A DNA stretch of 64,000 bases from Malacoraja senta (taxonomy: Eukaryota), in the NCBI GenBank assembly GCA_038087875.1, contig CM075989.1:23994001-24058000 (forward strand), read 5' to 3'. Shown piece by piece: positions 18,397 to 60,525 of the stretch. The translations under genes were made by a program, and so were the position numbers. Below the pieces are notes generated by a model, which did not search any database, was not told where the DNA came from, and saw only the letters and a program-made list of their open reading frames with translations. Within the stretch, counting starts at the first letter, position 1. Each line of letters starts with the position of its first letter.

Positions 18397-18438
18397 TCAC
18401 ATTATGGTGCACCCCGAGTCTTCATTCCCAGCATGACT
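18397..18438 (-). CDS. lmnl3: Lamin LIII terminal CaaX exon (LIIIa-type), SHAGNEDSGCTIM*
   Basis: ggtttccag|AGT CAT GCT...TGC ACC ATA ATG TGA; CaaX box CTIM, resembling the recalled amphibian LIIIa ending (SHQSVDPSCSIM). The full CDS from 58305 is 1827 nt (608 aa). AATAAA on - at 17871-17876. Confidence 0.88.
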   Translation of the reverse strand, partial: SHAGNEDSGCTIM

Positions 18439-26685: not shown

Positions 26686-26799
26686 CGTTGCACTATATTC
26701 AAGTCCACTTGTGCCCTCAACAGGACCATCAGACCCCTCTTCCCTAGATTTCCCTTCCAATGTTCCAGGCATTTGCACGGCAGTCCAAGTAGACATCTC
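26686..26799 (-). CDS. lmnl3: Lamin LIII exon 10 (114 nt)
   Basis: ttctacag|EMSTWTAVQMPGTLEGKSREEGSDGPVEGTSGLEYSAT|gtatga; phase 0/0, correct position. No long acidic run, unlike lamin B1/B2. Confidence 0.8.
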
Positions 26800-30172: not shown

Positions 30173-30292
30173 CGCTCCAGTGGCGTTGAGAAGGACCAGT
30201 CTCACATCATCTCCACTTCCCCATGATCTCTGTTCCTTCCACACTAAGTCTACAGAAGAGCACGAGGCACCATCGTGATTTGCAGCCCAGAT
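30173..30292 (-). CDS. lmnl3: Lamin LIII exon 9 (120 nt)
   Basis: tgtccag|IWAANHDGASCSSVDLVWKEQRSWGSGDDVRLVLLNATGA|gtgagt; IWAA...DLVWK.Q.SWG.G LTD motif. Confidence 0.95.
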
Positions 30293-30934: not shown

Positions 30935-31042
30935 AGTTACAGTTTGTTTGGCTTTAAGGGTAAAATGTGCAGGGAATCTGTATACAATCTGTGTCAAATC
31001 TTCAAATGTTCTCCTTATCATCCACCCTTTTAATGGTTGATC
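30935..31042 (-). CDS. lmnl3: Lamin LIII exon 8 (108 nt)
   Basis: tttgtag|DQPLKGWMIRRTFEDLTQIVYRFPAHFTLKAKQTVT|gtaagt; lamin tail domain (LTD) motif. Confidence 0.95.
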
Positions 31043-37314: not shown

Positions 37315-37528
37315 CTTATTGGAAATATTCCTTAATTTGACAAATTTTCCTTCATTGTCAATTTCATCTAATATAACTTTCCCTTTCGAATGTGTGTGTT
37401 CCTTTTTTTCATAATTATAGGCGGCAATCTCCGTTTCAAACAACTTTCTTTTCTTCCCACAAGGGGTGGAGACGTGGCTCGGTGAAGCTACCACGCTCTG
37501 GACCAAAGAGCGTGGAGTCAAGTCTAGC
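37315..37528 (-). CDS. lmnl3: Lamin LIII exon 7 (NLS KKRK, start of Ig-fold tail)
   Basis: gacag|G LDLTPRS...CGKKRKLFE...EHTHSKGKVILDEIDNEGKFVKLRNISNK|gtaaag. Confidence 0.95.
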
Positions 37529-38513: not shown

Positions 38514-38734
38514 CTTTGTTCCTCTCCCTCCAACATCTTCCTGTAAGCATTAATTTCCAGGTCCAAGGCCAGTTTCACGTCGAGCAGTTGCTCGTATTCC
38601 TCCAGCTTCTCCTGCGCCTTCTTGCGTATTTCCCCAATGACCTCTTCCTTGGCCAACATCCTCTGCTGCCAAGTGGCCCGCTCACGATCCAACAACATCT
38701 CCCGGTCCTGAACACTCGCCTTCAGCTCAGAAAT
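38514..38734 (-). CDS. lmnl3: Lamin LIII exon 6 (221 nt), coil 2B end
   Basis: tttcag|ISELKAS...[31 protein letters not shown]|gtatgt; intermediate-filament helix-termination signature. Confidence 0.97.
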
Positions 38735-39195: not shown

Positions 39196-39321
39196 CTGAC
39201 GTCTGCAGTGTTGGAGCTCAGACACCAGGCTCTGGGTTCTCACTTTAGCTTCTGCTGCTTCTTCCTTAGCGGCACTGGCAAAGTCGCTGTCCTTGGCTGA
39301 TGCCAACAGCGCATTCTCCAG
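39196..39321 (-). CDS. lmnl3: Lamin LIII exon 5 (126 nt)
   Basis: Long CT tract, then gatag|LENALLASAKDSDFASAAKEEAAEAKVRTQSLVSELQHCRRQ|gtaacg. Confidence 0.92.
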
Positions 39322-45172: not shown

Positions 45173-45343
45173 CTTGGTGTGGAAGCTTCTCTCCAGCTGC
45201 CCCCTGTACTGTTTGATTTGCTCAGACTGATCTCCCCTCAGTTTCTGAAGAACCTCACTCAGCTGCCGCTCATTTTCCACCTGATGAACAATTTCCGTTT
45301 CTTCGCGCCTCACTTCGTGCTTTCTCTTGACTTCAGTAATTTC
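45173..45343 (-). CDS. lmnl3: Lamin LIII exon 4 (171 nt)
   Basis: ccgcag|EITEVKRKHEVRREETEIVHQVENERQLSEVLQKLRGDQSEQIKQYRGQLERSFHTK|gtaacg. Confidence 0.92.
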
Positions 45344-49330: not shown

Positions 49331-49456
49331 CTTCTCGTGGAGGCTTTTCTGGAAATCTAACTGCACCTGCAATGCTTGCGTTTTGTTTTCCAGGTCACAT
49401 CTCCGTAACATTTCATCTTGCAGCTGTGTTTTGGTGTCATGGACGATTGCATTAGC
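49331..49456 (-). CDS. lmnl3: Lamin LIII exon 3 (126 nt)
   Basis: cctag|ANAIVHDTKTQLQDEMLRRCDLENKTQALQVQLDFQKSLHEK|gtatgt; the DEMLRR.DLEN motif is lamin-typical. Intron 2 is 90 bp. Confidence 0.93.
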
Positions 49457-49546: not shown

Positions 49547-49703
49547 ATTAGCCAGCTGAGCTTGGACTTCCAGCAGTTCACTCTCCAAATGCCTCTTCTC
49601 ACCCAGTGATGTGGACAGCTGCGTCTTGTTGTAATTCAGCGCCAATTCCCGCTCTCTCAACAGCGTTAAAGCAGATTCCAACTCCGACTCCTTTTTTGCA
49701 GTT
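49547..49703 (-). CDS. lmnl3: Lamin LIII exon 2 (157 nt)
   Basis: ctttcag|A TAKKESELESALTLLRERELALNYNKTQLSTSLGEKRHLESELLEVQAQLAN|gtagg; canonical lamin exon-2 length and phase. Confidence 0.93.
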
Positions 49704-56991: not shown

Positions 56992-57884
56992 GGCTACATG
57001 TCCCCCAGTGTGCGCTACCTGTCCCCCAGTGTGCTCTACCTGTCCCGTTTGTGCTACCTGTCCCCCAGTGTGGGCTACCTGTCCCCCAGTGTGGGCTACC
57101 TGTCCCGTTTGCGCTACCTGTCCCGTTTGCGCTACCTGTCCCCCAGTGTGTGCTACCTGTTCCCCAGTGTGTGCTACCTGTCCCCCAGTGTGTGCTACCT
57201 GTCCCCCAGTGTGTGCTACCTGTCCCCCAGTGTGGGCTACCTGTCCCCCAGTGTGGGCTACCTGTCCCGTTTGCGCTACCTGTCCCGTTTGCGCTACCTG
57301 TCCCGTTTGCGCTACCTGTCCCCCAGTGTGTGCTACCTGTTCCCCAGTGTGTGCTACCTGTCCCCCAGTGTGTGCTACCTGTCCCCCAGTGTGTGCTACC
57401 TGTCCCCCAGTGTGCTCTACCTGTCCCCCAGTGTGCGCTACCTGTCCCCCAGTGTGCGCTACCTGTCCCCCAGTGTGCGCTACCTGTCCCCCAGTGTGCG
57501 CTACCTGTCCCCCAGTGTGCGCTACCTGTCCCCCAGTGTGCTCTACCTGTCCCCCAGTGTGCGCTACCTGTCCCCCAGTGTGCGCTACCTGTCCCCCAGT
57601 GTGCTCTACCTGTCCCCCAGTGTGCGCTACCTGTCCCCCAGTGTGCGCTACCTGTCCCCCAGTGTGCGCTACCTGTCCCCCAGTGTGCGCTACCTGTCTC
57701 CCAGTGTCTCTACCTGTCCCCCAGTGTGCTCTACCTGTCCCCCAGTGTCTCTACCTGTCTCCCAGTGTCTCTACCTGTCCCCCAGTGTGCTCTACCTGTC
57801 TCCCAGTGTCTCTACCTGTCCCCCAGTGTCTCTACCTGTCCCCCAGTGTGCGCTACCTGTCCCCCAGTGTGCGCTACCTGTCCC
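56992..57884. repeat. Minisatellite of 21-bp units (18/19-bp variants), about 43 copies, containing the exon-1 splice donor
   Basis: Unit ctacctgtcccccagtgtgcg; 43 occurrences of ctacctg counted between 57001 and 57880. Confidence 0.95.
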
Positions 57885-58305
57885 GCAGCAGGCGGTTGTC
57901 CTCCCGCACGCTGCCCAGATCCACCTGTATGCGGGCCCGCTCCGCAGCCGCGGCTTCGCGCTGTCCCCGCCAGTCCTCCAGTTGCTGCTCCAGGAGGCTG
58001 CGGGTTCCCTCCCGCTCGGCGCTGTGGGCCAGTCGCCGCCGCAACACCCGCCGCTCCGTCTCCAGCCCGCAACTCTGCCCGATGCAGGCGGCCAGGCGGT
58101 CGTTCAGCGCCCGCAACTGCTGCATCTCCTGCAGCCGGCTGATGCGGGCCGGGCTGGGGCTGATGCGGGCCGGGCTGGGGCTGATGCGGGCCGGGCTGGG
58201 GCTGATGCGGGCCGGGCTGGGGCTGATGCGGGCCGGGCTGGGGCCAGACCCGGGCTCCGGCGACCCATAGCCCCGCCAGTAAGGCGTGGAGCTCCGCCAG
58301 TCCAT
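57878..58305 (-). CDS. lmnl3: Lamin LIII exon 1 (head, coil 1A, start of coil 1B); alternative in-frame ATG at 58356
   Basis: MDWRSSTP...(PSPARIS)x5 RLQEMQQLRALNDRLAACI...ERARIQVDLG...LLRD AG|gtagcg. Contains the LNDR helix-initiation motif and a phase-2 intron as in lamin intron 1. GC/CpG-rich. Confidence 0.88.
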
Positions 58306-58400
58306 CGGCCGCAGCCGCTCTCCTCCGGCACCGGGGCTAAGTCCCGACCGCCGCATCTCCGAACAGCTCCTCGCCCCGCACTGTGTCTCTCCCGCAGCAG
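57880..58400. promoter_or_regulatory. CpG-island-like region over lamin exon 1 and 5' UTR
   Basis: Very high GC and CpG density against an AT-rich background; coincides with the first exon. Confidence 0.6.
58138..58242 (-). repeat. Coding 21-bp tandem repeat x5 (PSPARIS)
   Basis: gctgatgcgggccgggctggg at 58138, 58159, 58180, 58201 and 58222; perfect copies. Confidence 0.95.
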
Positions 58401-58509
58401 CTCCCAGTCCCGCAAAATCTCCCCCAACACCAGGACAGTTCCAGAGATACGTGCGCCTCCAAACAAAGATAACAGAGATATTCGCCTTAATTGAATCATA
58501 AAAGTCCAG

Positions 58510-60525
58510 GGAGGCTCATCAAATGAAATAAGTATAAAAATTAAAGCGAAGAAGTACAACGTAGCAAAGATGAGCGGGAAGCAAGAGGATTGGGTAATGT
58601 TTAAAGAACAACAGAAGATAACCAAAAAGACAATACGAGGAGAAAAGATGAGGTATGAAGGTAAGCTAGCCAAGAATATAAAGCAGGATAGTAAAAGCTT
58701 CTTTAAGTATGTGAAGAGGAAAAAATTAGTTAAGACCAAAGTTGGACCCTTGAAGACCGAAAAAGGTGAATTTATTATGGGGAACAAGGAAATGGCAGAT
58801 GAGTTGAACAGGTACTTTGGATCTGTCTTCACTAAGGAGGACACAAACAATCTTCCTGATATAGTAGTGGCTAGAGGATCTGGGGTGACGGAGGAACTGA
58901 AGGAAATCCACATTAGGCAGGAAATGGTGTTGGATAGACTGATGGGACTGAAGGCTGATAAATCCCCAGGGCCTGATGGTCTGCATCCCAGGGTACTTAA
59001 GGAAGTGGCTTTAGAAATTGTGGATGCAATTGGTGATAAATTTCCAATGTTCTATTGACTCAGGATCAGTTCCTGTGGATTGGAGGGTAGCTAATGTTAT
59101 CCTACTTTTTAAGAAAGGCGGGAGAGAGAAAACAGGGAATTATAGACCAGTTAGCCTGGCCTGACATGTGGGGAAGATGCTGGACTCAATTATAAAAGAT
59201 GAGATAGCCGAACATTTGGTTAGCAGTAACAGGATCAGTCCGAGTCAGCATGGATTTACGAAGGGGAAATCATGCTTGACTAATCTTCTGGAATTTTTTG
59301 AAGATGTAACTGGGAAAATGGACAAGGGAGAGCCAGTGGATGCAGTGTACCTGGACTTTCAGAAAGCATTTGATAAGGTCCCACATAGGAGATTAGTGGG
59401 CAAAATTAGGGCACATGGTATTGGGGGTAGAGTGCTGACATGGATAGAGAAGTGGTTGGCAGACAGGAAACGAAGAGTAGGGATTAACGGGTCCCTTTCA
59501 GAATGGCAGGCAGTGACTAGTGGGGTACCGCAAGGCTCGGTGCTGGGACCGCAGCTATTTACAAAATACATCAATGATTTGGATGAAGGGATTCAAAGTA
59601 ACATTTGCAAATTTGCAGATGACACAAAGCTGGGTGGCAGTGTGAACTATGAGGAGGATGCTATGAGAGTGCAGGGTGACTTGGACAGGTTGGGGGAGTG
59701 GGCAGATGCATGGTAGATGAAGTTTAATGCAGATAAATGTGAGGTTCTCCAATTTGGTAGCAAAAACAGGAAGGCAGATTACTATCTAAATGGCATCAAG
59801 TTGGGAAAAGGGGAAATACAACAGGAACAGTCTATGAAAGTAAGCATGTAGGTACAGCAGGCAGTGAAGAAAGCGAATGGCATGTTGGCCTTTATAACAA
59901 GAGGAATCTAATATAGGAGCAAAGAGGTCCTTCTGCAGTTGTACAGAGCCCTAGTGAGACCACACCTGGAGTATTGTGTACAGTTTTGGTCCCCTAATTT
60001 GAGGAAGGACATTCTTGCTTTTGAGGGAGTGCAGCGTAGGTTTGCAAGGTTAATTCACGGGATGGCGGGACTGTCATATGCTGAGAGAATGGAGCAGCTG
60101 GGCTTGTACACTCTGGAGTTTAGAAGGATGAGAGGATATCTCATTGAAACATACAAGATTGTTAAGGGTTTGGACACGCTAGAGGCAGGAAACATGTTCC
60201 TGTTGTTGGGTGAGTCCAGAACCAGGGGCCACAGTTTAAGAATAAGGAGTAAGCCATTTAGAACGGAGACGAGGAAACACTTTTTCACACAGAGAGTGGT
60301 GAGTCTGTGGAATTCTCTGCCTCCGAGGGCAGTGGAGGCGGGTTCTCTGGATGCTTTCAAGAGAGAGCTAGATAGGGCTCTTAAAAATAGCGGAGTCAGG
60401 GGATATGGGGAGAAGGCAGGAATGGGGTACTGATTGGGGATGATCAGCCATGATCACATTGAATGGCGGTGCTGGCTCGAAGGGCCGAATGGCCTACTCC
60501 TGCACCTATTGTCTATTGTCTATCG
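58510..60525 (+). mobile_element. CR1-clade LINE ORF2 fragment, 5'-truncated, frameshifted
   Basis: ORFs 58570, 59168 and 59939 carry RT motifs; 3' tail (ctattgt)n. Confidence 0.95.

Follow-up and report, generated by a model that had tools for sequence, protein, structure and literature searches.

A lamin LIII gene on the minus strand of the window

The window analyzed here, a 64,000-nt stretch of contig CM075989.1 from the skate Malacoraja senta, carries a lamin gene that could be modeled as 11 exons on the minus strand, from position 58356 down to 18397, all with GT-AG splice sites and together giving 1878 nt and a protein of 625 amino acids (Table 1). Exons 2 to 11 were located by tblastn with the great white shark lamin-L(III)-like protein and their splice sites were set by eye and by script. 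All 11 exons match the white shark LIII protein in the same order.

Table 1. Features of the lamin LIII locus of M. senta (positions within the window)
Feature	Position	Strand	Remarks
Exon 1	57878..58356	-	Two ATGs, head, coil 1A, linker L1, start of coil 1B; donor AG/GTAGCG after 57878
Candidate ATGs in exon 1	58356-58354 (first); 58305-58303 (second)	-	
Coding minisatellite, (PSPARIS)x5	58138..58242	-	Five identical 21-bp units; residues 39-73 of the 625-aa model
Intron-1 minisatellite	57000..57888	-	21-bp unit, about 43 units, opening at the exon-1 splice donor
Exon 2	49547..49703	-	Coil 1B
Exon 3	49331..49456	-	Coil 1B
Exon 4	45173..45343	-	End of coil 1B, linker L12, start of coil 2
Exon 5	39196..39321	-	Coil 2; left out of A. 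radiata isoform X2
Exon 6	38514..38734	-	Coil 2 end with conserved 11-residue motif
Exon 7	37315..37528	-	Tail TP/SP sites, NLS KKRKL, start of Ig-like lamin tail domain
Exon 8	30935..31042	-	Lamin tail domain
Exon 9	30173..30292	-	Lamin tail domain
Exon 10	26686..26799	-	Acidic tail
Exon 11	18397..18438	-	SHAGNEDSGCTIM + stop, CaaX box CTIM

Exon 1 alone matched the Pfam Filament family with an E value of 7.7e-10 and 39.3 bits, the cut-off of 40 being set for the whole protein and exon 1 being a fragment, and it aligned over both head and rod with the human lamin A/C chain 6jlb (E = 1.2e-12). Rod motifs are legible throughout the model (LNDRLA at the start of coil 1A, YRKMLEGEE at the end of coil 2), and exons 7 to 9 are 59 to 73% identical to the lamin tail domain of protein P0015. 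The coil 1B of lamins is six heptads longer than that of the cytoplasmic intermediate filament proteins of vertebrates; in a comparison made up of lamins, the M. senta coil 1B aligned without gaps with Xenopus, Latimeria and shark LIII. Over its full length the model is 93% identical to both of the skate LIII proteins, which carry PF00038 and PF00932.

A profile search with exon 1 against 1.8 billion representatives clustered at 50% returned only lamins, none above about 50% identity, the top full-length match being the great white shark lamin-L(III)-like protein. The named proteins nearest to the M. senta sequence are without exception lamin-L(III)-like or lamin-B3-like. In a maximum-likelihood tree the M. 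senta protein is sister to the LIII proteins of Leucoraja erinacea and Amblyraja radiata, within well-supported skate (100/100), chondrichthyan LIII (100/100) and LIII (100/99) clades; the LIII clade excludes the A-type and B2-type lamins in this tree, which was built without any B1-type lamin. The full exon set, the tree and the named neighbors all agree with the original prediction that the gene encodes an LIII-type lamin. In a word-based search with the skate head, the only matches were the two known skate proteins; together with the matches of the profile search, this indicates that the locus has no annotated M. senta protein.

The gene is under selection as a functional copy. Using orthologous exons taken from two public skate loci, we found the open reading frame intact and ending in CTIM in all three skates, with a whole-gene dN/dS (Nei-Gojobori) of 0.19 to 0.24 among them and of 0.10 to 0.22 over the part of the rod encoded by exons 2 to 6. 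Since a dN/dS of about 0.2 denotes purifying selection, the gene is not a pseudogene; a decaying copy is ruled out by these values and by the intact reading frame in three species.

The unusual coil 1A of the skates, which reads AACIGQSCGLE in all three species versus AAYIERVRSLE elsewhere, was likewise considered as a sign of decay and rejected, the Tyr-to-Cys change being common to all batoids (it is also found in sawfish and stingray) and hence a feature of the lineage. At the coil 1A codons for AACIGQSCG (58080-58092), batoid LIII has Cys versus Tyr in nearly all lamins, while the replacement of IERVRS by IGQSCG is seen in skates only. The lamin A counterpart of the batoid Cys, Tyr45, is reported to promote disassembly as a target of Src (PMC8362257). 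In linker L1, the skates are without five residues that are present in all other aligned LIII proteins.

The coding repeat of exon 1 and its variation among skates

Within the head-coding part of exon 1, Tandem Repeats Finder detected a repeat of period 21 at 58137-58244, with 5.1 copies, 100% matches and 0 indels (score 216). Read on the minus strand, the codons from 58242 to 58138 give PSPARIS five times, each 21-bp unit being CCCAGCCCGGCCCGCATCAGC, letter for letter. The array is in frame because 21 nt make up seven codons, and a perfect in-frame repeat of 5 x 21 bp is far beyond chance. The translation thus reproduced, at exactly the positions first given, the five perfect in-frame units of the original prediction. 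The translation around the array is GSG-(PSPARIS)x5-RLQEMQQLRALNDRLAA, the end of the array being directly joined to RLQEMQQLRALNDRL, the start of the predicted rod helix. Each of the five units carries one S-P-A-R site and an extra S-P arises at each unit junction, so that the 35 residues comprise four S-P sites at junctions in addition to the five of Ser22 type. Every unit also contributes one arginine, and the net charge of the head is about +5.

An AlphaFold2 model of exon 1, for which the alignment input consisted of 13 LIII heads, left residues 1 to 73 without secondary structure (pLDDT about 44 to 51) and started a single long helix at residue 74, the Arg of RLQE. According to this model, the array is part of a predicted disordered head and touches the first rod residue, and the two prolines per heptad would keep it extended and flexible.

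The original prediction had also considered a translation start downstream of the repeat, but both candidate ATGs (58356 and 58305) precede it. In the alignment, the second stands opposite the start Met of other batoids (MDWRSSTP versus MEPRSSTP), and the next in-frame Met is found within coil 1A, from where translation would yield a headless lamin. The upstream in-frame ATG (58306-58356) is common to the three skates and adds 17 residues (MRRSGLSPGAGGER...) before the batoid-type Met.

Sequencing reads were examined as Logan contigs of k = 31, which break in a perfect period-21 array and cannot count its units; the count of five is that of the assembly together with a rough k-mer depth. In two DNA runs from the same organism and different samples, 91 to 98% of the sampled exon 1 words were present. 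The contigs of run X2 cover 57860-58166 and 58215-58559, and a contig of run X1 covers 58215-58545, all ending about 30 nt into the array; both runs were taken to be DNA because their contigs extend into the intron and the upstream region. No RNA run of M. senta came up in a search for such runs. Breaks from both sides imply a perfect repeat of at least two units, as a single unit could not give this pattern, and in X2 the word depth summed within the array was about three times that of the flank. Similar breaks were seen in a relative about 93% identical (organism C), in which 6 nt are inserted, in frame, immediately N-terminal to the array. In another related skate (organism G), a 240-nt contig of the RNA-labeled run X17 joins 58136 to 58221, skipping 84 bp or exactly four units, and represents a single-unit form. 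This may reflect a one-unit species, a short allele, or a contraction during reverse transcription or assembly; splicing inside the array was rejected as the source of the skip, there being no GT..AG ends on the coding strand. By their variants, neither C nor G is L. erinacea or A. radiata. Taken together, we regard it as very probable that the array is real and translated.

The number of units differs among the skates: 5 in M. senta, 7 in L. erinacea and 3 in A. radiata (Tandem Repeats Finder copies at the same place of 5.1, 7.6 and 3.1, respectively). The L. erinacea units read SNPARVS, PNPARVS, PSPARVS and then PSPARIS four times, the latter four differing only by a synonymous ATC/ATT; those of A. 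radiata read PSPARVS, PNPARVS and PSPARIS. Length differences among the three species are always multiples of 21, preserving the frame. Across their 15 units, the P-A-R, the final Ser and each junction S-P are constant, unit position 6 is Ile or Val, and the Ser22-type acceptor is Asn in three. A single unit was found in Pristis, Hypanus, Carcharodon, Scyliorhinus, Heptranchias, Callorhinchus, Xenopus, Latimeria, Gallus and Lepisosteus, and the S-P of the last unit with the S-R that follows is constant in all 13 aligned LIII heads.

Among 239 lamin-like sequences, a 7-residue tandem repeat in the head was seen only in the three skates, the other repeat signal being a small 5-residue duplication in one bird LIII. 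L. erinacea and M. senta have five full S/T-P-x-K/R sites in the head, and the other sequences 0 to 3, usually one; only skates reach 12 to 13 S/T-P. The comparison of LIII exon 1 proposed with the original prediction gave 3, 5 or 7 units in skates versus one in sharks and chimaera, and its premise that lamins normally have a single such site is in keeping with the usual count of one outside L. erinacea and M. senta. On this sampling, the array is skate-specific and variable in length. Its occurrence in three skate genera implies that it predates their split, i.e., that it is at least as old as a divergence corresponding to a dS of 0.11 to 0.16 among the three skates. The five identical units of M. 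senta, where older variants have been replaced, point to recent homogenization. Hence, the proposal that a coding minisatellite has multiplied a unit of the head is sustained by the 21-bp units, their differing number and the preserved frame; that of a recent expansion stands in part, the array itself being old (3, 5 and 7 units in three genera) and its homogenization to five identical units recent.

A second minisatellite of equal period lies in intron 1, outside the coding repeat, and marks the locus as slippage-prone. Its unit includes the exon-1 donor (AG/GTAGC...) and bears an in-frame TAG, so that splicing from a decoy donor further downstream would give a truncated protein. The same minisatellite has 41 units in L. 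erinacea (L001, 3511-4373) and 18 in A. radiata (L002, 3427-3797). By eye, unaligned, its unit bears no evident similarity to the coding unit.

On the other side of exon 1, some 200 bp before the lamin ATG, 58531-59060 is a very high-copy interspersed repeat with a plus-strand open reading frame (58570-59058) that, read by eye, is putatively reverse-transcriptase-like. Summed over contigs, its word depth reached 1e5 to 2e6 in three DNA runs; in the RNA-labeled run it was at most about 2e4. Elsewhere in the window, three 300-nt stretches of 308-2059 recur at 6089-7841 with 100% identity and a spacing of 5781 to 5782 bp, which suggests that about 5.78 kb has been duplicated in direct orientation; because the copies flank an N gap (3635-3834), the duplication may have arisen in assembly, around this gap.

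A multiplied CDK1 site and its possible consequences

In the alignment with lamin A/C (6jlb), SPARISRLQE stands opposite SPTRITRLQE, the last unit being aligned with Ser22-Pro-Thr-Arg25 just before coil 1A. By alignment, PSPARIS is the positional homologue of lamin A residues 21 to 27 (LSPTRIT), which hold Ser22 and Arg25. The heptapeptide had been singled out as a Ser22-type CDK1 site, a reading that fits both the alignment to L21-T27 of lamin A and the full S-P-x-R consensus of each unit. When CDK1-cyclin B phosphorylates Thr19 and Ser22 of the lamin A/C head, the two phosphates additively abolish the ACN interaction, the head-to-tail contact of coil 1A with the end of coil 2, and Arg25 and Arg28 have been proposed to bridge to Glu330 in an ionic network that the phosphates disrupt (PMC9400090). 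Expression of LIII in oocytes and early embryos has been documented for Xenopus (PMC2200128, PMC8869099).

The explanation that we favor overall, with a probability of roughly 0.6, is that of a real, skate-specific array that copies the Ser22-type site, with the extra sites phosphorylated and their number tolerated. Slippage in replication or unequal exchange would make the array grow and shrink within a GC-rich, minisatellite-prone exon 1 and intron 1. In M phase, active CDK1-cyclin B would phosphorylate several, if not all, exposed SPAR sites, including at germinal-vesicle breakdown if the skate gene is oocyte-expressed as in Xenopus. Phosphorylation would thereby turn the charge of the head from about +5 to net negative, and the added phosphates would reinforce the known charge competition that breaks the contact between coil 1A and the coil 2 end. 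Copy number would probably be weakly constrained, that is, tolerated and not finely tuned. For the phosphorylation of the extra units by CDK1 taken by itself, the odds seem somewhat better than even.

The most serious competitor, to which we would give perhaps half the weight of the reading just outlined, is that the array is translated but functionally silent: slippage in a GC-rich exon would produce near-neutral length variants of a disordered head, without meaningful effect on assembly or disassembly of the lamina, and the last unit alone, in its ancestral register, would work. The presence of 3, 5 and 7 units among close relatives, and perhaps of one unit in another, is what such drift would look like, as is the change of the acceptor Ser to Asn in 3 of the 15 units. 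The adjacent head (residues 1 to 38, before the array) seems to be under weak constraint, with a dN/dS of 0.6 to 2.4 that rests on very few changes, a noncoding minisatellite of equal period lies 250 bp away, and the lamin heads of other animals range in length from 30 to over 100 residues. Neutrality accounts less easily, however, for the constancy of P-A-R-[I/V]-S and of every junction S-P in 15/15 units, or for the purely synonymous differences among the four PSPARIS units of L. erinacea. Moreover, an exposed, optimal S-P-x-R next to a bona fide CDK1 site is unlikely to escape phosphorylation, and phosphates on the lamin A/C head act additively (PMC9400090).

We consider it improbable that arginines and added length, rather than phosphorylation, are the main means by which the extra units act, strengthening or respacing the contact of the head with coil 2 and thereby tuning head-to-tail polymerization of an oocyte lamina. 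The arginine gained with each unit, its constancy in 15/15 units, the head charge of about +5 and the Arg25/Arg28 network with Glu330 in the lamin A/C model (PMC9400090) would suit this idea, but only the last unit can have the ancestral spacing to coil 1A, and the two prolines per heptad are predicted to leave the array extended and flexible. Least credible of all is an artifact, i.e., a copy number distorted in the assembly by collapse or expansion, or an array left untranslated by a downstream start of translation or transcription. Perfect repeats are error-prone in assemblies and the k = 31 contigs cannot count units; yet the array is short (105 bp), unit-to-unit words occur in two DNA samples with a roughly 3-fold depth in X2, and arrays occupy the same place in two other, independently assembled skate genomes. 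Against lack of translation stand the position of both ATGs upstream of the array, the alignment of the second with the batoid start codon, the headless product of a start at the coil 1A Met, and the preservation of frame by all indels between species.

Within the favored reading of phosphorylated extra sites in tolerated number, it is a separate matter whether the number of units itself matters. Judging from the sequences compared, weak constraint is more plausible than fine tuning, since copy number varies freely and the acceptor Ser has been lost from 3/15 units. Distal units may contribute little, since the last unit alone has the ancestral register beside coil 1A. We accordingly view an adaptive, tuned effect of unit number as unlikely. 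The original suggestion of an "ultrasensitive" germinal-vesicle breakdown, taken as adaptive, fares slightly worse, its odds being lowered by the variable copy number, the S-to-N units and the weakly constrained neighboring head. Also unlikely is the specific proposal that the number of Ser22-type sites might determine at what threshold, or how fast, the lamina comes apart at germinal-vesicle breakdown and in the early cleavages of the very large skate egg.

Significance and comparison with known systems

Lamina disassembly has its textbook switch in the CDK1 site of the head, which in animal lamins hardly varies and usually occurs once; here it is multiplied, in a number that differs among related species. 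Two annotated skate proteins that bear the repeat are already public, and full-text literature searches found no paper on the repeat in skate lamin or on skate lamins in such a sense; what is new is an LIII lamin in which a coding minisatellite has multiplied the putative polymerization switch. The locus illustrates that a slippage-prone coding repeat can carry even a motif central to the regulation of a structural protein. With the skate series one can ask whether the effect of extra phosphates on the head-to-tail contact is additive or cooperative, a question otherwise approached through engineered mutants. If the threshold reading were true, the skates would provide a natural allelic series (1, 3, 5 and 7 units) of a multisite switch tuned by minisatellite slippage. 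If functionally silent, the array would still be a useful length marker in skates and a caution when comparing lamin heads.

The M. senta protein belongs to the same family and clade as Xenopus lamin LIII (lamin B3, lmnb3), fish lamin L3 and bird LAML3, and shares with vertebrate LIII the rod, NLS, Ig-like tail and CaaX box as well as the head motif SP-x-R-[IL]-S-R-[LM]-Q-E before coil 1A. It departs from other LIII proteins in having the head motif five times instead of once and, like the other skates, in the extra in-frame ATG 17 codons further 5', the divergent coil 1A and the 5-residue deletion in linker L1. With human lamin A/C it has in common the S-P-x-R CDK consensus, the equivalents of Arg25 and Arg28 and the same position in the head; lamin A/C, however, has one Ser22-type site plus Thr19, whereas five Ser22-type and four junction S-P sites are predicted in M. 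senta.

Tandem coding repeats that multiply proline-directed Ser sites are known from the KSP repeats in the tails of neurofilaments H and M, themselves also intermediate filament proteins, and from the YSPTSPS heptads of the RNA polymerase II CTD. Both lie in disordered regions, and their copy number varies between species and, for NF-H, between alleles. Unlike these C-terminal arrays of tens of units with established functions, the skate array has few units, lies in the N-terminal head, at the putative polymerization switch, and occurs in a single ray family only, and its resemblance to the KSP and CTD repeats is one of analogy only, without sequence homology.
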